From Syncephalis fuscata S228 (lineage: Eukaryota > Fungi > Zoopagomycota): a stretch of DNA of 64,000 nt. Shown here piece by piece: positions 271 to 63,790 of this stretch; positions within the stretch are counted from its first letter, which is position 1; the number at the start of each line of letters is the position of its first letter. The notes below the pieces were generated by a model that ran no database searches, was not told where the DNA came from, and saw only the letters and a program-made list of their open reading frames with translations. The position numbers and the translations under genes are program-made. Location: the NCBI GenBank assembly GCA_025786725.1, contig JAHLTZ010000008.1, forward strand, positions 372,001 to 436,000. The letters run 5' to 3'.

Positions 271-2610
271 GCAACAGGCAGCCGGCCTAGCTAATGCAAC
301 CAATTCACCTATGGCTGCTTTACAAAATAAGCAGTTATTAATGCAAATTCAACGTATGCAATCAGCCAACTTACTAATGCAGCAACAAAATGCCACATCT
401 TCTATGGTAATTATTCATAGTAATAACACTAATTAATACTAATATGTTACTATTTAATAATAGACACCCAATAAAGGAGGACTTGGCATTATGACACCAA
501 CGATAGCTACACCCACAATGTCAGTCAAAGATGAACAACGATACTCGCCACGTATCATTCCATGTGGTATTGTAGCAGCCAGTACAGGAGAACCTTGTCG
601 TCGTCCTGTCAATCAACTAGGTGACGTATGTCGACTTCATTACCGATTCCAACGAACACCACAACAAATTGCGGCAATGGAAACAGCTGCATCTAATACA
701 GCATCGACAGCAACACCACCTATTGCATCACCACCACCGGCCACTTCAATGATACCATTGGGTGCTTCAATGCCTCCTACACCTCAACAGGCATTAATGA
801 TGGGTCAGCCACAGGTAAATGTCGATTATACATGTTTAAAAGCTAACTAACAATACTATATCTGCACTGTTCCATTAGTCAAATACGTTTACTTGGAAGG
901 TTAATGTGCCATCGGCCAAAAGACCATCTAACTTTATTAATCAGCAATTATCACAAACTTCCATGATGCATATGATGAATGGTGCAGCTGGACAAATGAA
1001 TCAATTACCCGCTGATATTTGTCCATTCTGTGGCATGGACGAGTCACCAGTTGAAGATGATGAGGAACAGTTAGGCAATAGAGCGGTAACGGGCAAAGAT
1101 CGTGTACGTTGTGTGCAATGTCGTCGATCTCATCATTTATTGTGTACACATCTGGATAATGCCACGGTAGCTGCCGCCGTTAAAAGCTATCCCTGGCAAT
1201 GCAATGATTGTAAAACGTGTGTTGTTTGTAAAGAGGCCGGCGATGAATCCGAATTATTAATTTGTGATGGATGTGATCGGGCCTGGCACATGGGCTGTTG
1301 TGATCCAGCTGTAAAAGCATTACCAGAAGGTAAATTACTATTTGTTATCTAATTACATACTGATTACTAACTATTATTTACCATTTACCATTTAATATAC
1401 AATTACTTTTACACCATTTATTTTAGGTCGTTGGTATTGTGGATTATGTGCACGATGCCATAGTTGTTCTTTAAGATCGCGTAAATCACATGAACGAGCT
1501 ATGACATTATCATCGGATGCATTCCATCCTACAACTATGACCAAGGCAGGTACTGAAGGACGTGAAGTATTTGTGACCATGTTTTGTAATTTATGCCATC
1601 GTGACTATGAGGCTGATCGTTACTGTCCTGTATGTATTGAGACATACCACGCACCATCAACACAAAGCTCGCCAAATGGATCGGTAATTGGTGAAGGTGA
1701 AGAGGCAGCTACACCAGTTATTAATGATGTTGAAACGAAATCAGAATCAGTACCGGCATCAGTAACGGCATCAGCATCGGAATTGGTACCGACATCAGCA
1801 TCATCACGTCCACAAAGAACTGTCTCAAAGCTAACTAATGAACAAGTAGCAAAAGCATTAGCAGAAAGCGATGAAGATGACGAAGATGACGACGACGGCG
1901 AAGATGACAATGACAATGGCCCAACAAACAAGTCAGCCAATGAAGGAAGTCTATTACCACAACGAGGTCGTCCACGTAGATCACGTCTCCCACCACAACG
2001 TTATCCAGCTGGTGGTGAAGAGCCAATTGTCAATACAGCAACAGGCACTCATGGCCGAAAACGACGACGACCACCTATTCCACCCCAATCACCTGACAAT
2101 GACGATACAACAACAACAGCGTCAAGTGGTGGTACTGATAAAGATATGGTATGTTGTGATCGATGTGATCGCTGGGTCCACGTTACTTGTGATCCTTCAA
2201 TGACTGAAGCAGCCTACGAACGATTAGCCAATGATACGGGTGCCCACTATGTATGTCCATTATGTGCACGTTATACAGAAGTGCAATTAGCAGTACGACG
2301 ACCATTACAACATGGTAGGGCAGGTCGATATCCACGTAATGCACATCTAGTAGGCGATGAACAAAGTATAAAGGATGATGCACTTGCTGTACCGGTACGT
2401 GAAGTACTTATTGATGTAACTGGTCAGCGTGGATTGGCAGCACCAGCCTTACACGCCACAGGTCATGGCACATTTGCCGGTGATGGTCGATTTCGCGATC
2501 AACCTTGGCAGCAACAAAAGCAACAGCAACAGCTGCAGTCACAACAACAGCAACAGCAACAAGTAATGGCAGCGACCATTGGACTACCATCGACGAAAGG
2601 TGTATCTTAA
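1..2610 (+). CDS. Poly-Q, multi-PHD-finger chromatin reader (DPF/PHF10-like double PHD plus MLL-like extra PHD); 5' end lies outside the window
   Basis: CPFC..CVQCRRSHHLLC..WQCNDCKTCVVC..LLICDGCDRAWHMGC..WYCGLC, then CPVC..CCDRCDRWVHVTC..YVCPLC. GT-AG introns at 407-463, ~814-879 and ~1330-1425. Confidence 0.85.
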
Positions 2611-2775
2611 TAGTATTATTCATTTGATAAACCATTGATTAATAATAATAATAATAAAAATAAACTATTAATAACATTGGCAACAATAGTAGACCATTAG
2701 CAATAGTGACTACTCTAATACTACTAGATATTACAAATAATACCAAAGTATTTATTTAATTACTAATTAATCAAT

Positions 2776-5700
2776 CTAGAACAGTCCAACAACACGACCA
2801 TTCTCGATATCGACATCATAGAAGCAGGGACGAGTAGTTAGACCAGGCATGGTTTGCATTTCGCCAAGTAATGGATAAAGGAAACCAGCCCCGACACTGG
2901 CCCGAATATCACGAATAGGCACAGTGAATCCAGTGGGCACATTTTTAAGATTTGGATCATGTGATAAACTTAAATGAGTCTTGGCCATACAGATGGGCAG
3001 ATGAGCAAAGCCTTGACGTTCATAACGAGCAATTTGTTCACGGGCTTCATCGCTAAAGGTAACACCATCGGCACCGTACATCTCTCGGGCAATGGTTTCA
3101 ATCTTTTCGGGAATACTTGCATTGACATCGTATAACAAGCGGAAAGTATCGGAATTATCGGATTTACGATTACATACTTCAACTAGACGTTCAGCCATAG
3201 CAACTGCACCCTTACCTAGTCATATGTAGAATAAAATTAATATCTATACTGCAGAATATAAAATAGAATACAGTGCTACTTACCACCTTCGGCCCAATGA
3301 TTGCAAACAACAGCGTCATCGGCACCGGCTGCCTTGGCCGCAGTACGAATGGCTTCAACTTCGGCTTCGGTATCGGTGGCAAATCGATTAATGGCCACTA
3401 AAACAGCCACACCGAATTTACGAGCATTTTCAATATGCTTAGCAAGATTAGCCGCACCCGCTTCGACTAGTGCAACGTTTTCTTTTAGATACTCGGCGGC
3501 CAATGGACGACCAGGCACGACTTTAGGACCACCGCCGTGCATCTTCAATGAACGGACAGTTGCCACAAGTACCACAGCATCGGGAATAAGTCCTGAGGCA
3601 CGGCACTTGATATTAAAGAACTTTTCCATACCAATATCGGCACCGAATCCAGCCTCAGTTACAACATAGCCAGCCGATGATGGATCTTGGTCATCGGTAT
3701 AGCCGGCCAATTTAAGGGCAATGGCATCAGCAAGAATGGATGAATTACCATGGGCAATATTAGCAAATGGACCAGCATGCACAAATACAGGTGTGCCCTT
3801 TCGTTATAAATAAATAACATTATTATTATTATTATTATTAATGACACTATTATTTATAACTTACCTCCAGTGTTTGCATTAGATTTGGATTAATCGTATC
3901 TTTCATAAGTACAGTCATTGCACCACCTACACCCAAATCATCGGCGGTAACAGGTGTACCTGCTTTGCTGCTTGCTACAACAACACGGCCCAATCGTTCA
4001 CGCATATCCTCTTGCGATGAACTGAGCGCTAGAATGGCCATACATTCACTGGCCACGGCAATATCAAAGCCAGTCTGGCGTTCATGGCCTTGTTCGGTGG
4101 CATTCTGTCCAATGGTTATCTTGCGTAAGAAACGATCATTTGTATCGACGACACGACGCCATGTAATGGTATCGGGATCGATATCGAGACGCACAAATTG
4201 TGATCGTTCCTCTTCCGTTAAATCTTCTGGTCGGGTCTTATCAATGCCTAGTTTGCGCAGACGACGCAACATAATATTTGAGAATTTACGTTCGCCTTGC
4301 TTAATTGGACAAAGACGATTAAATAATGCCTATTAATAGAATACATATGATTAGTATGATTAGTGTTGGTATTTCTATTCATTACCTCATCGCTTTGTGT
4401 TGCCTCGTGGAATATACGCGTATCAATAGCTGCAGCTAATAGATTATTGGCTGCTACAATGGCATGTATGTCACCAGTCAAGTGCAAGTTAAACTCGTCC
4501 ATTGGAATGACTTGCGAGTAGCCACCACCTGCTGCACCGCCTTTAATACCAAATGTCGGTCCTTGTGATGGCTGGCGTACACAGGCAAATGCCACTTTAT
4601 TAAGATGCGCACCCAATGCTTGGGTCAAACCGATGGTTGTTGTTGATTTACCTTCACCGAGTGGTGTTGGCGTGATGCCCCAACGACAACATACTTGCCA
4701 TTACGACGATGGCGAAGACGATGCAGCACGTTAACATTGACCTTAGCCTTGTACTTGCCATATGGTTCAATCTAGCATAATTGAATGAGTAAATCGGTTT
4801 AATCATAATATCTGTGCTTATTATAGCTTACCTCGCTTGGGAATAGAGCAAGTTCACGAGCCAACAGCTGAACTGGCTTGGGTGTTTGGGCCATAGCAAT
4901 ATCGATATCGCTGGGTACAGGTTCTAGTGGAATAAGCGGTAATGGCGTTGGTACACCGACATGATTTTCAAGTTCTGCATGCTTCGCCGCAATGACTGTA
5001 TTGTTCATTAGCATGGCGACAGTCATTGGTCCAACACCGCCAGGTACAGGTGAAATGGCACTGGCCACTTCTTGAGCTGAAGCAAAATCGACATCGCCCA
5101 CCCAACGAATGCCTGATTTGCGAGTTGTGTCGGTAACAGCGTTCATACCGACATCGATAACAACAGCGCCGGGTTTTAACCAGCTGCCTTTAATTAATTC
5201 AGGCTTGCCGGCTGCTGCAACAACAATATCAGCACGTCGAACCTACCCATCTACTAGTTAGCAATGCATTAAACAAGTTATCCTATCGATCACCTACTTG
5301 TTCTTCTAGGTTCTGGTACGTGCATGGCAAAGTGTTGCCGTAGCATTGTAATTACAAAGTAGAGTAAATACCGGAAATCCCTAGAATAATGCTATTAGTA
5401 TAATCTAATATTAATGTACTCAGCAAGTATATCTAGCTACGTACAACAATATCACTACGACCAACGACAACAGCATTTTTGCCTTCAATCTCAACACCTG
5501 GTTCATTTGGTTAAATACAATAAACTATTTTTTAAAACTACACTTACCAGATCGAAGAAGCATTTCAATGACACCCTGTGGCGTGCAAGCCACAAAGAAT
5601 GGTTCACAGCTACGTTTGGTAAGCTGCCAATATTGATAGGATGGAATCTATTTATAATATTAATACAATGACTGTGTCAAATTATTTGTAATTATTGTAC

Positions 5701-6240: not shown

Positions 6241-7269
6241 ATTTGACGTGGGGGTTGCGTTTGCGGTAGAAGAGAAGAAGTAGCGCTGTACTGTAGCTAA
6301 CGTCGACAGGATGGGGCACCTGAAAGACCACGACTTTATTAGTCGCCCGTGCGTATCCACACAGCTGGGCTTATGATGCAGCGGACAATTGAATGGCACA
6401 CGTCTTGGCCCAATTAGGCCTTGCGCAGAAAGAGCAGCGACAGGCGTCCATCGCGTGCCCAAACGTGCTTGCAATCGACTAATATGGGCAACTGTATGAC
6501 GTAGTGATGCGTTGGAAATCAAACGATAACGCGAGTACAATGCAACCTGTTGGCAAGTAAGGGGCATGATAACAAGAAGATGAAATGCCAATAATGATAT
6601 GTTAAAAATAAATAAAAGATTAAGATGGATAGTCATCTATGTACTAATAAGGGCAATAAACAAGATCGTTTTTCTAGACATGGAAATAGTGTTGGACAAT
6701 AAATACGGTTTATTACGACGGTTTACCTGAATAGGCCTTTAGTTTATTGCAGATTTACCAAAATTGCTTCATAGTAACATGCTTGGCATAACAGGGTGTA
6801 TTAGTTGTGTTTAATAAATAATGCAATATTATAAGTTAATTTATAAGTAATGGTATAAATAAGAAATAAGACTGGTTTGTTGCTATGCAATGCTATTAGT
6901 TTGTAGCATTTGTAATAGTTGTTAATTTATTGATAAAAATACTAAATTTATATTAGCAAAAATAAAACACTGGTTTTACTACTCTTAGCATATTATGTTT
7001 TTAGCTCATACAAATATACTAATATGTCATTATAAATAAAATGTATACCAAAATCACATAGTCACAGTGAGCTATTTGTGAATTTATACAATACTTTAAA
7101 TTATTCAATGGATGACTTATTGCTAAAAATATAGTTCTATTTTAATAGTTATCTATCATAAAAACTATGTATAAACACATTAATAATAATGTGTTTAGTA
7201 TTAATGGTCGCGTTTTAATGCAATTGTCAAATGATATTGCTTTTTTGTCAAATATATATAAAGTACATT

Positions 7270-52261: not shown

Positions 52262-53364
52262 GTTTAGGCTAATAACTATGAATACGGTGAGTGTCAAGTA
52301 AATGAATAATCATTCGCGAATAAAAAGGAGAATAAAGAGATAAAGGAGACGATGCTGTATCACAACAAGATTATGCTTGTGAGTCTTCATGCCTACCGAC
52401 TATTAATGTCTTTGTACTAATATACCAATTTTAGTGTATCAGTAACTGCTATTTTAAACATTTATTTTACTCAAATGGTGTGCTGAGTATGATCATTTAT
52501 ACTAATATTTTTATTAACTCTTTCTCTTTCTCTCTTAATGGATCAATATTTAATTGTATATACAAGGCATAGTTTAAAATAGGCATGCTTATAAGTATTT
52601 TATTCAACATTTAATAAGAGTTATTATTTACATACTAAATCTAATGCTTACAAGTTTAACTATCAATTATAATATTATTCTATGATAATGACATTTGTTT
52701 ATGCATTGATATTCATCCTTTTTATTTACCAGTGACATTGTTTTATAAATATACTTAATTTTATGCAATTAGTTTTTATTCTTTCTTTTATTCCACCACT
52801 TGAACAATTCCTTGTTTGTATTTTAATTTATTCATAGCTTTATATGTACAATGCCACTTGATTTATGGCTTGTATAAATCATTTCATTTACTATTAAATA
52901 AATATAGCCATTTTTGTACATTAAACAATTTATTAATAATTTAATCTAATCTGATGTTAAATGACTTAATTTGATACTAAATCTACAATGATGAGTATTC
53001 AATGATTGATGTCACTCACCACTCACCACCATGTTCAATAGATTAAATGTCATCGAATCCAGTCATTTAACACCAACTTACATTAAATAGTTAATAAACA
53101 ACTTGAAATTATTGTTAAAATGAGCACGTCAATATCGCTGTATTAAATGCAACTAACTGCAATATGTTGATTTATTTTTTATTTAATTAATGAACTAAAT
53201 AAGATATACGATAGCATATGGTTACTATTCTGCTTGTAATAAAGCAATAAGCATACTACTAGTGTTGCACTGTTCGAATAACCTATAATAAAGCTTGTTA
53301 GTATTTGATAGTACTTTTATTATATTCGGTTGAAACGGAGTGTGAGTCCATATTTTTATTTTCA

Positions 53365-54192
53365 AAAAATATGAAGCTTAAAGTAGAATCGTTTTGAAAT
53401 GTGGTTTAGAAGCATTCTGTGTATGGTTTTGCCAGTAGAATTATCGTTAAACTTGTAACTCTATACAATTTCTTTACTTGCTTGTATTAATAGCTAGTGG
53501 CTGCGTTGATGTAAAAGTAATTACATTCCAAGATCAATAGTTTGGCTTTGCTTTTTAAAGTTAACAATATATTATGCTGCTTTATACAAAACAAAAACCT
53601 AGCCATTATAATTCAATGTAATTCTGTAGAATTAGTTTGAGGTCAAAGGGGTACAAAATAAGGCAAATAAATCATTAGCTCAAATGATAACCGAAAATAG
53701 CTACAATATATATATATATATGAAACGACATTACATATTTGTGTTTCATAATTACATCAATCATACTTGGTAAGGTACAACTTTTAAGTAGCCAAATGTA
53801 AATAGCATATGTAGAATAATCTGCTATACAAATCAATAACAAACATAGAGATATAATTACTTACTGATTGCACTACATTTATAAACCAGCTAATTATATA
53901 TTTAAAGCACATTTATCATAAATGTAATAAATTGATATTTAAATCATTTGTGTTTATTCTGTTATTTATATAAAACAACGCAATTTATTGCCAGTTTTAA
54001 AAAGCAAAGTCAAATTTGATAGTCTGGAGTGTAATTGCTTTTACATCAACACAGCCACTAGTCATTGAATTAAGCAATTAAAGAAATCATATAATGCTAT
54101 AAGTTTAAAAATAGTTTATGACAAAACTGTACACAAAATGCCCCTAAATTATATTTTTATGATTACATACTATGAAATAGTACGTATATTTT
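53365..54192. repeat. Second-family foldback/MITE-like inverted repeat (arms ~53365-53595 / ~53958-54192)
   Basis: tagtggctgcgttgatgtaaaagtaattacattcca pairs with tggagtgtaattgcttttacatcaacacagccacta. Confidence 0.85.
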
Positions 54193-54433
54193 TAGATATT
54201 GTTTTAAACGATAACCAACTAGTCCTTTGCATGGGATCATAAACAGGTAATTGTTACAGAAATACCGGTTACATTTGAGAACTTTTACATATTACAATCC
54301 AATTATCTACCCAATATCTTATTTAAATAGAGCAACGATTTTTAATTTGTAAAACAATAACTCGCTACCAACTAACATTGGGATTACTAATTAATCTATT
54401 TTTTAAATCTTCAATACTCCTTTAAAACCTACG

Positions 54434-57076
54434 ATGCATTTGTCACTTTCTAAGCTACTTTTTGTGCTGGCACTAGCAATCGAATTGAATTTGCCTATTA
54501 TAAGTAAGTTTTAAAACTTAAATATCATGTTTTGTCGTAATTACTAATATTTACTGAACACTAAACAATTTTGGTAAAAACAACGGCCTAATTCCTGCAG
54601 AAGCCACCCCGCTTGATCATGGCGATTCGGCTCAACCACCCGTCGTAGCAACAAACCCTGACACCGGTAACAAGGCTTCACCCGCCCAAAGTCGGTAATC
54701 TCACCCGAACCCGCCAAGCCAAGCCAAACTGCACCAGCAAAAATACACCTTCAAAACCAGGTCAGGTCAATTGGAAGTATCCTATTGTACGTCGAGATCA
54801 GTCTGTTGTCGAGACTATTCATGGCCATAAATTGCCGATCCATACCGATGGCTGGAAGATGCTAATAGCAATGAGACCAAGGTTAGATTTAGTCTAATTG
54901 GCTTTTAATAAAACTAACAAATAACTAGGCATTTGTCAAGGACCAGAACAAGCTGACAGACTCTTATTTAAGCCGAAATAGCCAGCGCAATGCTTATATA
55001 AGCGCGTAGGTAGCATTAAATGTATTAACAAAATAGCTACTAATTATTTATTGAATCGTTAGAGTTACTAAACTATCTAGCGGCAACTTGATACGCGCGC
55101 CAATGAAAGCTGGAAATTATTACTATACGATTTATCAATCTAATCCAGATAAGCAGAGTATTTTGTATAAGCAGAAGTCATTGGATGCTGAAAAGACGGT
55201 TTTCTTTGATCCAAACAAATGGGACAAGAATGATGTTATTTCTATCGATCGAACTTTGTTTTCTAGTTCCGGAAAATATTTTGGTTATATTATGAGAAGA
55301 ACTGACAACGACTGGGGCACCATACGCATACGTTGTGTTGAAGACGGCCCACATTGCAAGGCTGGCCAGGATGCAATTGATGAAGTCAAGTGGACCAAGT
55401 TCTTCACATTGCCTGGTCCCACGATGATCTCGGCTTTTTTTACACAGTAAGTTATAGCTATTATCCACATTGTTTTATTTATTTATTTACAATTGATTAG
55501 CGTTATCCAGAACCAAGTGGTGGCGACAAAGCTGCTAACACTGGGGCAAGCGGCAGAAAAAATTCTAAAGTTTACTACCATCGTCTTGGTACACAGCAGT
55601 CGAGCGATCAACTAATTGCTGAATATCCTGAAGCTCCTACATATACTATATTCCCTTTGACAAGCAATGATGGCCGCTGGCTAATAGTAAGAGTTACTGA
55701 TAATAAACGTAACGAAGATGTATGGATGGCTCGTATGGGTGAAGATGGAAGTGTACCAAAAAAAATTACATTCAACAAGATAGCAAATGATATGAACGGC
55801 TATCATAATTAGTAAGTAGCAATATACATATATTTAACTTAACTAAATCAATTTTATAGTATTACCAATATTGGAGATCGCCTTTATTTTTATACCGACA
55901 AAAATGCTCCTCGTTCTAAAGTTATTACATATGACATGGCAGCTCCAGAAAAGGGATTTGTCGATTTGATTCCTCAGCATGAAAAAGACGTTTTATATTG
56001 TGCATATCCTGTAGGAGGCGATTATCTTTTGCTTGAATTTATAAAAGATACAAAAAGTGCTTTATCGATCCATCAGCTTAGCACTGGCAAAAAAATCCGT
56101 GATATATCATTGCCTATGGGCACAACGAACGATATTTACACAAACTATAAACATACTGAAGTATTATTTTCAATAACTCTTTTTTGAGCCAAGCCACCAT
56201 TTACCGCTATGACGTTAAATCAGATACATTGTCTGTGATAAATGAATTGAAAATACCTGGATTTAATCCCAAGGAATTTGAAACACGCCAGGTATTCATT
56301 AAAAGCAAAGACAACGTAAAGTTTTCTATGTTTATTACAGCACGCAAAGGAATTTCACTCGACAAAAGTCACCCAACTATCTTATTTGGTGACGGCGGCT
56401 TCTCTTATTCACAAATGCCACAATTCACTACGCTATGGGGTGCTTTCCTCAAACATTTTAATGGCATTGTGGCTGTCGCGAATATACGTGGTGGTGGTGA
56501 ATACGGCACTGAGTGGCGTAAAGCTGGTATGTTACAAAAGAAGCAAAACACATTTGATGACTTCCAAAGTGCTGCCAAATATCTTTCTGAGCAAGGCTAC
56601 ACCAAACCGTCATTACTGACACTTCAAGGCGACGGTACCGGTGGCCTAGCAGTTACCGCTACTGCTAATCAGGCACCCGAATTGTTCGGATGCGGTCTAA
56701 CCAATAGTGGTCTTACGGATATGCTACGATTCCATAAGTTCCCCTATGGAAGTGCCTGGCTAACAAATTCGGCAATCCTGATGTTAAAAGTGAGTTTGAA
56801 TATTTATTACGGTATTCTCCATTACACAATGTCGATGCCAGCAAAACTTATCCAGCACTACTTTTAAGCACATCAGGTCAATTGGATCATATATCATCAT
56901 TCAATTCATATAAGTTAGCTGCTGAACTTCAATATAAACTACCAAAGAATCCCAACCCATTGATGCTTCGTGTTAACTATGACGCTAATGCACAATCATC
57001 AACGACCCAAATTAATCAAATTGTGGATAAGCTTTCATTTATGGCAATGTCTCTTAATCTAAAATGGCATGATTAA
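54434..57076 (+). CDS. Secreted prolyl oligopeptidase (S9A) homologue lacking its catalytic residues
   Basis: ADPYRWLED, KVYYHRLGT.Q, NIRGGGEYG.EW..AG...KQNTFDDF and DMLRFHKF motifs; hydrophobic N-terminus MHLSLSKLLFVLALA; nucleophile motif reads GDGTGG. Confidence 0.9.
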
Positions 57077-58317
57077 GTAAATAATTAAATGGTTATCAGA
57101 ATTGATAAACCATTAAATATAGCTTCTTATTATTTGATTAATAAAATGAAACTATTAAAACACAAATACAAATGTATCATATAAGATTGTACTAAAATTT
57201 ATTGTTTTTTAAATGTTATAGCATTCATTGTTACTATTTCGCATATTCAATAATTTGATGTTAAAGCTTGATTATATCGATTACCAAATTGGTGATCTAA
57301 ATTAATTACTAATGCTATTATCATATAATTTGCATCACATTAGCAATAATCATAATTAGCTTGCGAATGAACACCCGGTCCTGCCGACTTCAAGTAACAA
57401 TTTCAATTAATTGATGTTTTACCAACAGTCCAGGTCCTTTATAAGATAGTTTCTGATTGTTATCAACTATGCAACCTATTGTAAGCATATTATTTACTTT
57501 AATAAATAGAATAATACCCACACTAATTGCTAAAAGAAAAGAACACATCATAAATCTAAATTCTTTCAATTTATTGTTAAAGTTTATTGATTATAAAAGT
57601 ATTATCAAATACTAACAAGCTTTATTATAAGTAATTCGATTAGTGCAATGCTGATAATATGCATATCATTTTACTCCAAGTAGAATAGTAACAACATGCT
57701 ACCATATATCTTATTTAGCTTATTAATTAAATAAAATAAATCAACATTACAATTAGTTACATTTAATACAGCGATATTGACGTTGCTTATTTTAACAATA
57801 ATTTCAAGTTGTTTATTAACTATTTAATGTAAGTTAGCGTTACATGATGGATTCAATGACATCTAATCTATTGAACATGATGATGGGTGTTAAGTGACAT
57901 CAATCATCAAATACTGTCATCATAGATTTATTGTCCAATATGCATATATCATCACAATATGTGTTATTGCTATGTATACCCGTCCTTTTACTGATTAACA
58001 TTAAAATTATAACTAATTGCATGATCTAGTTTATTTATAAATAATTTTAATAGAATCCGCTATATTCATATTATTTGTTCTACCAATATAACTTAGTGAA
58101 CAAACTAAGTGCGATAAGTCAATTTATTAATAAAAAGTTGTAACTGTACCAATAAAAGTTATAGACAGCGTATATCCAATATATAATAAAATGATAAATA
58201 TTATAATGAATATGCAATATTGAACGAAATTAGCGATGTTCAAGCTACTGAGCATTATACATGATCAATAAGCTAAATTAGTCGACATTTGTTAATAATA
58301 AAGCTAAAGCAATAACG

Positions 58318-59288
58318 AATCTATGATAATGAGTATTTGATAATTAATGTCACTCACCATCCAATATCATGTTCAATAGATTGGGCGTTATTAGATGTTA
58401 GTCATTTGTCCCCCAAACAAACAATAAATGACTAATAAATTTAATTAAACTGCCTAATAATATTAAATAACACACAATATTTTATATGATGATGCAGTCT
58501 ATTTAACTCAATTAACAGTACTAAAGTTAAAAGCAAAATGGAATAATACATAGCATGTATATATTAATGCAACAACAACGAATGTGGAACGATATGGGAT
58601 TGATCATATGGCTTTTATTAACATTCAGTTAATCTTTCTACATGTGACCAACAATAGTCGGTCAAGTGTTCCAAAAAAATCAAATAGTTGTTACATTATT
58701 TATTTAAATCAATTTATTAACAACATTTTAGTTTGATTCCCACATTTGAAGTCCTCAAAACAAAATTCGTTCCAATCAAGTTATATTGTTATGCACAGCA
58801 TAGTTACATTACTTCCTATTAAAGCGTTGTTAATAAATTGATTCAAATAAATAATGCAACATACTATTTGATTTTGAAACATTTAAGACTGATCAGTGTT
58901 GTTGTTGGTTATGTGTAAAAAAATCGATTAAATATCGACATATACAATGAGTTACATTCACTGCAATTACAACTATGTTAGCTATTTTAAAAATGATATT
59001 AGTAATATTTAGTTAATTGCTCTATTTGATTGTGTTAGTGGTGTTGCACTAATATATACATACTATGTACCATTTCATTTTTAACTTTTACTTTTAACGC
59101 CTGTTAATTGAGCTAAATAAACTACATTATCATATAAAATATTTTGTGTTATTTAACATTATTAGGCAATTTAATTAAATTTATTAGCCATTTATTGTTT
59201 GTTTGGGGGACAAATGACTATTTTAATAATATTGAACATATTGAACATGGTACTAGGTGGTGAATAGCATTAGATATCAAATTATACT
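58318..59288. mobile_element. ~970-bp foldback (near-complete palindrome) MITE-like element
   Basis: agtcatttgtcccccaaacaaacaataaatg (58400) vs catttattgtttgtttgggggacaaatgact (59189). Inner arms ~58620-58730 / 58820-58930. Shares its outer motif with the 52978/57930 arms. Confidence 0.8.
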
Positions 59289-59819
59289 GGTTTGAATACT
59301 TTGCAACAACGACAATATGGATTAGAATTTACCTATTTATTATATTTTATTGTAAATAACATAGAATATTATTTAACATTTATTAACACTAATATCAAAT
59401 ATTGAAAATAGTGCGGACTGCCTCATTTTCACTTGAACTAACTGGAATTGATATAACACTATCTTAACAAATAACAATTCTCAGTATTAAAAATTGATTG
59501 ACGGTTTATTATTCAAATTATAAATCTTTTGTTTCCAATTTGAAGCTAAGGACACAAAGTAAAATGGCTTCTATAGTTTAATTATATAGTACTTTGTGTA
59601 TTCTTTTGTTTACTTATTCATTTATTTATTTATTTGTATGTTGTTTTAATAAAGTTGAATGTAGTAATAGTACCCTCGCTGTACTTTGTTACAATTCGTC
59701 AAAAATATTCGCATTGATAAAAAGAAAAATACGGATTAATCAATCATTTCATTAATAAACTGCGTTTAAAAGTCATTAAAACAATAGCGACGGTAATGAT
59801 TCATAAGCAAAAAAACGTA

Positions 59820-63100: not shown

Positions 63101-63542
63101 ATTAAAGACAATAAAATATAAAGAAAAGCGGTGTTATGATAATGCCCTGTTTTACCCTAGCTAGCCAAATAGCAAGTGACCATCATGTGATCATATACAG
63201 TGCGGGTGGTGTAGCTGCCATCGTGTTGGATTAATACCACATGCTTATCGTCTAATATGCTTGTATATACATATTATTCATACCATTTGTATCTTGATAT
63301 TTCAGTTCATGTACCATGCAATTGTATATCATATTTAATTACTTGTTTAAAGACGCAATACAAGAACTAGTATAGTCTTAATCATATAACATATTGTGTG
63401 TTATTTGACATTAGCATATCATTTGTTTATAAACAGTTTATTAACAATCCATTCATTTAGCGAGCTATATGTACCTAAATATATAAACAATAGAATGTGT
63501 TTAGTATAGCATATAATGATATATGGTAGTATGGAATAGAAA

Positions 63543-63790
63543 TGATATATGCATACTGGATAATAAATCTACAATAATGAGTATTTGATGATTGATGTCA
63601 CTCACCGCCCATCATCATGTTCAATAGATTGGATTTTATTTGATATTAGTCATTTAACTACCAAAACAAAGCAATAAATGTGATGATGTAATGATGTAAT
63701 GATTAAATAAAGCTCACCATTTGTTTCCATGTTCAATAGAACGAAAATGTAGTTCAACTACGCGAATGTTACAAAAATAGTCATTTGGCC
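63543..63790 (+). repeat. Further copies of the foldback terminal motif (one long at ~63543-63680, one partial at ~63712-63790)
   Basis: aatctacaataatgagtatttgatgattgatgtcactcacc..catgttcaatagatt..agtcattt matches 52980 and 58318. Confidence 0.85.

Follow-up and report, generated by a model that had tools for sequence, protein, structure and literature searches.

A gene related to prolyl oligopeptidases (POPs) lies between two long inverted repeats in the window, a stretch of 64,000 nucleotides from Syncephalis fuscata S228, and the locus raises the question of whether the gene is the cargo of one mobile element or is flanked by two. An earlier note had described a single Foldback or Pack-MULE-like element with arms at 52978-53320 and 57593-57930. 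With repeat finding and gapped self-BLAST, we confirmed that the arms are reverse complementary, the left arm at 52947-53323 (forward strand) matching the right arm at 57590-57959 (reverse strand) with 84% identity over 378 columns (E=7e-98). In a search of the 29-Mb genome of Syncephalis fuscata they were mutual best matches, closer to each other than to any other genome copy. Each of the two arms contains one core motif (53015-53042, forward strand, and 57867-57894, reverse strand) and a terminus motif (53283-53310, reverse strand, and 57603-57630, forward strand). No tandem repeats of note were detected in the window arms, and no known RNA families in a search across 52300-59600. A weak extra match of about 52742-52775 with about 58005-58040, noted previously, arises because the arm symmetry in the gapped alignment runs on weakly outward to 52641/58233 (72% over 689 columns). 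The match of the right arm near 63543 was likewise recovered (63542-63658, 84%), and a further family copy begins at the window's end (63542-63740, forward strand, with tandem core motifs at 63601 and 63713). Inner arm sequence absent from the element at 58.3 kb had been taken to mark the arms as one pair; this sequence is real but not private to the pair, being a subfamily arm domain present at 15-20 other loci. The inverted arms belong to two separate foldback-type repeat copies, each arm being the end that faces the gene.

We counted 1,222 core motifs of the repeat family across the genome, on many contigs, compared with 0 in a reversed control. Long inverted repeats within single elements, internally repetitive arms and a dispersed multi-copy distribution are hallmarks of Foldback elements, and the family is abundant, old and Foldback-like in Syncephalis fuscata. 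All sampled non-POP loci with both marks showed the ordinary layout of terminus, approximately 320 nt, core motif, loop, core motif, approximately 320 nt and terminus, with a conserved loop and with unique DNA outside the termini. Closely spaced motif pairs in the loop-type configuration outnumbered others 8 to 1 by our own count among the matches listed. The arms of single elements are 97-100% identical, as exemplified by the C24 element (437-nt arms, 98-100% identical, and a 613-nt loop) and the C146 element (327-nt arms, 97% identical). In many family arms the core motif occurs two to three times in tandem, spaced by about 100-120 nt; the termini fall into at least two length classes, and half or hybrid copies are common. 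Large near-perfect inverted duplications with ends inside family arms were also observed on C157, C26 and C35.

At the POP locus, the repeat termini on both sides (about 53405 and 57597) point toward the gene. What had been taken for the outer ends of the arms leads into loop sequence conserved in a complete family element (57597-58557). Given that both termini face the gene, it occupies the flank position between two elements and not the loop of one; as each family element is near-palindromic, two neighboring copies necessarily offer inverted arms to the DNA between them. With the family termini at their inner ends, the arms do not look like the two arms of one element, as had been proposed. 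Of the original interpretation, membership of a Foldback-like family is supported; the single-element architecture and the Pack-MULE assignment are not.

The left element (FB_L, 52550-53405), as delimited by matches to reference family copies, is internally deleted; its parts are a tail-type arm in reversed orientation (52550-52976), the core module (52973-53098), the arm domain (53099-53323) and, from 53324 to about 53405, a terminal extension, with the terminus facing the gene. Repeat coverage rises at 52550 and drops to paralogue level at 53350-53450. On this side family homology stops at about 53320-53405, followed by unique DNA in non-POP copies, with homology to the left element ending at about 53405 in the non-POP copies L003, L008 and L022. 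On the right side it ends sharply at 57597, and nine independent non-POP copies break off at 57586-57603 with unique DNA beyond. The right element (FB_R, 57597-58557) is complete and of normal layout, as judged from colinearity with reference copies and the repeat-coverage profile: terminus, arm, core motif, loop (57960-58311), core motif (58353-58380) and arm. A loop deletion of approximately 250 nt is the sole break in colinearity with the reference copies, and the two arms of this element are of different subtypes and just 65% alike. The second, nested foldback that had been recognized between the arms is indeed present directly upstream of the gene (53439-54116, with arms at 53439-53590 and 53965-54116, 75%); it was found in POP copies only, and its loop is inverted in the copy on C309. 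The structure at 58312-59288, previously regarded as an "empty" relative of the POP element, is a palindrome (inner arms 58399-58518 and 59101-59220, 93%) made up of the right arm of FB_R, a partly palindromic low-copy spacer of approximately 500 nt and a solo family arm (59059-59288). Its kinship to the family is genuine, but it has in common with the POP arms only the core module of approximately 125 nt and is thus a family-level relative, not an empty site.

The gene itself (54435-57076, forward strand) contains introns, and its hydrophobic N-terminal exon, judged by eye to begin at 54435, is predicted to encode a secretion-type, signal-peptide-like N-terminus. In exon-by-exon searches, single exons matched Peptidase_S9_N and Peptidase_S9 in Pfam, bearing out the claim that an entire intron-containing POP-like gene lies between the arms; one exon aligned with solved POPs at E=1e-62. 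The predicted product resembles S9A POPs (porcine POP, PCY1 and OphP) in its beta-propeller and alpha/beta-hydrolase domain but differs from them in its N-terminus, in belonging to a five-copy family and in its active site: in the alignments to solved POPs, Gly takes the place of the nucleophile Ser and a gap falls at the position of the catalytic His, whereas the catalytic Asp may be retained. The gene is therefore predicted to encode a catalytically dead POP homologue with an incomplete S9A Ser-Asp-His triad. Compared with three paralogues that stay in frame, the window copy shows an apparent one-base frame break near 56765; an apparent frame break is also present there in the C312 copy. In RNA-like contigs of one small public run, the only one found to contain the stretch, the GT..AG intron at 54880-54926 was removed, and the gene or its family is transcribed. 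Divergence was about 0.12, 0.08 and 0.13 at codon positions 1, 2 and 3, respectively, compared with 0.12-0.155 in non-coding DNA, values that suggest weak selective constraint on the gene.

The POP segment (53405-57596, forward strand; approximately 4.2 kb), which comprises upstream non-coding DNA, the gene and 3' non-coding DNA, is confined to five paralogous copies on five contigs: the window copy (W, on C350) and those on C290, C312, C257 and C309, which are 84-90% identical to it. The gene is accompanied by 1.0 kb of upstream and 0.5 kb of downstream DNA, and together with the proximal arms the unit measures about 4.2-5.5 kb. The dispersed amplification of the gene with its arms, to five copies, is real; that secreted genes are mobilized or amplified had been part of the earlier note's inference. 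The neighbors differ among the copies (lipase, P450, MULE remnant, ornithine decarboxylase and MBOAT), and five dispersed tight units lacking neighboring genes resemble a mobile element more than an ordinary segmental duplication, a point against spread by recombination. Identity between copies is 84-90% in the interior and just 66-82%, the family level, in the arms, and neutral divergence between copies is 12-15%. The outer ends are ragged and differ in every copy, with no boundary common to all five, and the distal halves of the flanking repeats belong to different subtypes in different copies. The C312 and C290 copies are 97-100% identical upstream and 88-92% identical in mid-gene; those on C257 and C309 agree at 98-100% across 3.4 kb, although each retains an end missing from the other; and those on C290 and C309 have the right arm in common (99% identical). 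The copies are thus mosaics, a pattern indicative of gene conversion. Arm pairing is strongest within a locus (W, 85%; C312, 86%), compared with 75-78% for left arms between loci.

We also looked for the signs of transposition that the earlier note had failed to find, a target site duplication (TSD, of 8-10 bp for Foldback elements) and a transposase, and likewise found neither. Alignment of family termini yielded no usable TSD, the ends being too variable and the copies too old for one to be excluded, and a k-mer search for a TSD outside the C312 block returned only AT-rich chance matches. No transposase with family ends was found in the approximately 250 kb of the genome read in detail. Longer inverted motif pairs enclose an MFS transporter, ORFs that are F-box-like or unknown, and a 503-amino acid zinc-finger ORF. 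The last of these was not recognizable as a transposase, having no Pfam domain and, as homologues, uncharacterized Mucorales proteins. The MULEs of the genome, with terminal inverted repeats (TIRs) of 100-220 nt (four best loci with uninterrupted matches plus several decayed ones), were rejected as a partner: in BLAST comparisons their TIRs resembled neither the arms nor the reference copies of the family. The one long joint in the RNA-like contigs, skipping from 52945 to 57865, was considered as a deletion allele and discarded, as it contains 37 unrelated letters and a 24-nt side and was read as a family copy elsewhere.

We consider it somewhat probable that a gene for a dead POP lying between two foldback elements has spread, and been homogenized, by recombination on the foldback repeats, a mechanism inferred from sequence patterns and not observed. 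The gene would sit between two foldback copies with their termini toward it, and the gene and the proximal arms would form a discrete unit copied to five unrelated chromosomal sites. Copying would have proceeded through homologous recombination, with the dispersed foldback repeats serving as portable homology; candidate routes are ectopic gene conversion, template switching and a circle integrating into another repeat, with a transposase acting on the arms being less likely. The same repeat-based recombination may later have homogenized the copies, and within a locus, the inverted arms would be kept alike by conversion between them. A fuller version, in which the gene caught between foldback repeats is a recombination cassette copied into other repeat sites, perhaps via a circle, and then exchanged by gene conversion, and in which the duplications on C157, C26 and C35 stem from the same repeat-driven recombination, is tentative and on balance doubtful.

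Alternatively, the block may be a composite (macro)transposon, in which both flanking foldback elements moved together with the intervening DNA by means of their outer ends. Pairs of FB elements in Drosophila move large intervening segments, and the POP unit is discrete and scattered among unrelated genes, is flanked on either side by a foldback element or its remnant in three of the five copies (W, C290 and C312) and, on C290, is bracketed by 316-nt inverted repeats that are 97% identical and 5.8 kb apart. However, one arm is missing in the other two copies, the flanking elements resemble one another only at the family level in their distal halves, with subtypes that differ between copies, and neither a TSD nor a transposase linked to the family was found. 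We regard this explanation as possible but unlikely.

It is very improbable that the foldbacks inserted independently beside already dispersed paralogues, with a preferred target next to the gene. The arms of paralogues are no closer to each other than to unrelated family copies, the left arm of the window copy, for instance, being 83% identical to L003 and 78% identical to the left arm on C312, but the paralogues have their junctions at identical nucleotide positions. Moreover, the terminal approximately 80-100 nt of the left element (53324-53405) are conserved at paralogue level (84-91%), and this element was therefore in place before the copies diverged. Least probable of all is a single Foldback or Pack-MULE-like element with the arms of approximately 340 bp as TIRs and the peptidase gene as central cargo, an interpretation already largely contradicted: the arms are mutual best matches and accompany the gene in several copies, and Foldback elements with unrelated middle domains are known (PMC4079207), but the polarity is opposite to that of every ordinary family member examined, the sharp termini face the gene, the five copies share no outer boundary, the arms are not related to the MULE TIRs and the searches yielded no TSD.

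The family shares with Foldback transposons and FB-like elements (Drosophila FB, Tetris and Galileo), as defined in PMC4079207, a dispersed high-copy distribution, long inverted arms that match almost perfectly within each element and contain tandem core-motif sub-repeats about 100 nt apart, a non-coding middle domain, many rearranged, half or hybrid copies, and an association with inversions and duplications. It differs from them in that the middle domain is conserved across copies and not variable, in its zoopagomycete host, and in that no TSD or transposase was found here. No described foldback family in zoopagomycete fungi was found in the literature searched. With regard to the POP unit, the resemblance to Pack-MULEs lies in host-derived coding sequence between inverted repeats in several copies; Pack-MULE status was rejected given that the unit has no TIRs in common with the MULEs of the genome and includes a complete gene, with promoter and introns, rather than captured fragments, and that this gene lies outside the repeat termini. 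In maize Ac/Ds macrotransposons, a host gene lies between two transposon copies and is multiplied with them. The "TE" of Ising is reportedly an FB-flanked composite element of Drosophila. The POP block resembles both in that a host gene between two transposon copies multiplies together with them, but its flanking elements vary by copy, its ends are ragged and its copies are recombination mosaics.

These results show that a zoopagomycete fungus, from a group whose mobile DNA has hardly been described, has an abundant family of foldback-type repeats. They also provide a concrete case in which such repeats border the five dispersed, recombining copies of a gene family for a predicted secretion-type dead enzyme. 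Given that foldback elements are palindromic, a pair of them makes any gene in between appear enclosed in a single large inverted-repeat element, and the polarity of the family termini needs to be checked before any cargo is called. If the recombination-cassette reading is true, a secreted gene family of a mycoparasite would have spread and diversified without a transposase, and such spread of parasite gene families would be testable. Distant POP paralogues were also located at C24:310967 and C175:1097.

A repeat search and self-BLAST showed that the two segments bracketing a prolyl oligopeptidase (POP) gene at 54435-57076, namely 52947-53323 and 57590-57959, are reverse complements with 84% identity over 378 columns (E=7e-98), and that this symmetry, with gaps allowed, extends weakly outward to 52641/58233 at 72%. 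On a search of the whole assembly of S. fuscata (29.4 Mb, 371 contigs; the window is C350:372001-436000), a zoopagomycete that parasitises moulds, the best match of each arm was the other arm, the next full-length copies being 70-71% identical. One multi-copy ORF of this assembly has 99% identity to a protein assigned by NCBI to S. fuscata. The reverse-complementary arms described in the earlier note were thus borne out, as were a nested foldback between them (53439-53590/53965-54116), a palindrome at 58.3 kb (58312-59288) and a match of the right arm near 63543 (63542-63658). The palindrome joins the far arm of the right-hand element, through a spacer, to a solo arm. Since only the core module is common to it and the gene-flanking arms, it is a relative at family level and not the "empty" one that had been proposed.

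The arms belong to a dispersed Foldback-like family with two sequence marks: a core motif (CTCACC, nine bases, CATGTTCAATAGA), with 1,222 genome-wide occurrences against 0 in a reversed control, and a 28-nt terminus motif (n=14 at up to three mismatches), located here at 53283-53310 (-) and 57603-57630 (+). At sampled non-POP loci with both marks, element order was invariant (terminus motif, arm of ~320 nt, core motif, loop, core motif, arm, terminus motif), with a conserved loop of 460-900 nt. Among the closely spaced core-motif pairs in the matches listed, a manual count gave 8 to 1 for the loop-type arrangement versus the opposite. Arms within single elements were 330-440 nt long and 97-100% identical, with a likeness of only 60-85% between different elements. 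Many arms contained two or three tandem core motifs ~100 nt apart, and in each copy unrelated DNA started past the terminus motif or, in a longer end variant, ~100 nt farther. The same anatomy defines Foldback-type elements (PMC4079207). The consensus and ends of the family are defined only roughly, with ~250 kb of genome read in detail; neither a target-site duplication at ends so defined nor a transposase of the family was found in those ~250 kb.

At the window locus, the core motif of the left element lies at 53015 (+) and the terminus motif left of the gene at 53283 (-); to the right of the gene are a terminus motif at 57603 (+), the core motif of the right arm at 57867 (-), the loop of the right-hand element at 57960-58311 and, beyond this loop, a core motif at 58353 (+). 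Homology to the right arm ended at 57586-57603 in nine independent family copies, and left-side homology to family copies ended at 53315-53334, or near 53405 in the long-end variant. The coverage profile of all fetched loci showed high-copy DNA at 52550-53400 and 57600-58550, with paralogue-level matches alone between them. On these homology limits and this profile, the right arm is itself the left-hand arm of a complete family element spanning 57597-58557, whose sequence is colinear with reference copies save for a ~250-nt loop deletion. The left arm likewise is the right-hand arm of an element (52550-53405) that has an internal deletion, and the POP gene occupies the position of flanking host DNA rather than of a loop. 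Because each element is nearly palindromic, DNA between any two adjacent copies is bordered by inverted arms.

Four further full-length copies of the 4.27-kb interior, 86-88% identical, were found on contigs C290 (inverted), C312, C257 and C309, together with two more distant POP paralogues that matched in the coding part only (64-65%). Neighbouring genes differ at each of the five full-length loci: a lipase-like gene (identified by eye) in the window, a P450 at C290, a decayed MULE directly abutting the left foldback element at C312, ornithine decarboxylase at C257 and MBOAT at C309. The POP unit is therefore a tight, dispersed unit and not a large segmental duplication. Family elements stand on both sides, termini towards the gene, in the window copy, C290 and C312; C257 has part of the left arm only and C309 the right arm only.

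Identity to the window copy was 84-89% in the non-coding interior, 88-90% in the gene, 84-88% in the left terminal extension and 66-74% in the left arm domain (C309 is without both of the latter), and 78-82% in the right arm domain (which C257 is without). Arm identities among POP copies did not exceed matches to unrelated family copies, the outer homology limits were ragged, being different in each copy, and the flanking elements were hybrid, with distal halves of different subtypes. Arms were most alike inside one locus (85% in the window, 86% in C312), compared with 75-78% for the same side across loci. The copies are also mosaic: C312 and C290 were 97-100% identical upstream and 88-92% mid-gene; C257 and C309 were 98-100% identical over 3.4 kb, each retaining an end absent from the other; and the right arms of C290 and C309 were 99% identical, with identity breaking off sharply within the core module. 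Mosaic copies, ragged limits, the mixture of subtypes and arm pairing within loci indicate repeated ectopic gene conversion among the POP copies.

We infer that the POP unit most likely spread by homologous recombination, with dispersed foldback repeats as the homology, that the same process keeps the copies homogenised, and that the two arms within one locus convert each other. Composite transposition by a pair of foldback elements is a live rival because the POP unit is so discrete; it predicts that identical complete elements flank every copy, with target-site duplications, but the distal halves differ in subtype, C257 and C309 each lack an arm, and alignments of termini and a k-mer search outside the C312 block gave no target-site duplication. 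The single element with the gene as cargo, favoured in the earlier note, conflicts with the polarity, since family termini face the POP gene and not outward. A Pack-MULE, also suggested there, conflicts with the MULE terminal inverted repeats (TIRs) of this genome, which are unrelated to the arms.

The gene between the arms is a POP homologue interrupted by introns. Its exons, searched singly rather than as a joined spliced model, matched Pfam Peptidase_S9_N and Peptidase_S9 and solved POPs at E=1e-62; in alignment with the latter, Gly replaces the nucleophile Ser and a gap takes the place of the catalytic His. Read by eye, the first exon, which begins at 54435, gives the protein a hydrophobic N-terminus resembling a signal peptide. 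In the one public run found to contain the stretch, RNA-like contigs, some exact to the window copy and many at 90-95%, covered the exons and left intergenic DNA uncovered, and the GT..AG intron at 54880-54926 was removed; the POP family is therefore transcribed, and the window copy itself probably so. Different one-base frame breaks, six bases apart, occur near 56765 (56760-56770) in the window and C312 copies and may be assembly errors or real decay; C290, C257 and C309 are in frame there. Differences among copies at codon positions 1/2/3 were ~0.12/0.08/0.13, versus 0.12-0.155 in non-coding DNA; protein-level constraint is weak.

Several further features of the copies and the genome were observed. 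The nested-foldback loop is inverted in the C309 copy (L038 4639-5207 versus window 53392-53959), which suggests flipping via its own inverted arms. GC-rich insertions of ~200-290 nt interrupt the nested foldback in C312 (L032 ~2330-2620) and in C290 (L031 ~6760-7050) and, in C290, also the loop of the right-hand element (L031 ~1924-2122); they may represent another small element family. RNA-like contigs of run X1 stacked to a summed depth of up to ~1,500 on the core modules at 52900-53073 and 57772-57945, with 0 on the arm DNA beside them; RNAs with the core module seem to be abundant from somewhere in the genome. MULE-type transposons of ~2.3 kb with TIRs of 100-220 nt, four with uninterrupted MULE-domain matches, lie at L054 (C312:138446-141586) 461-2844, C90:23312, C351:15327, C336:21728 and C339:307853.

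Large near-perfect inverted repeats seem plentiful; those of L042 (C26:14300-23800; 3.4 kb, 98.8%) and L044 (C35:63000-67500; 778 nt, 99.5%) carry family core motifs. An MFS transporter gene in L033 (C157:28000-37000) lies within a perfect inverted duplication of 2,203 nt (112-2314/6799-9001) that may be longer. The arms of this duplication contain protein-kinase fragments, their inner edges lie 68 nt beyond a foldback core motif, and either a recent fold-back inversion or an artefact of assembly could explain it. L028 (C359:18455-21579) and L029 (C24:224617-227741) are 99.7% identical over 3.1 kb that include a family element and its flanks; they reflect either recent segmental duplication or redundancy of the assembly. 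In L045 (C26:4800-9700), inverted arms with 99% identity (1-1205/3634-4834), in which foldback-family sequence is present, enclose a 503-aa ORF (1968-3476) that lacks introns and encodes a C2H2-like finger. Several copies of this ORF exist (C26, C217, C99 and C263 at 97-98%; decayed ones on C313 and C304), and it yielded no Pfam domain. Its only homologues were uncharacterised proteins (~32% identity) of Mucorales, the hosts of Syncephalis, and it may encode an unclassified mobile-element protein.
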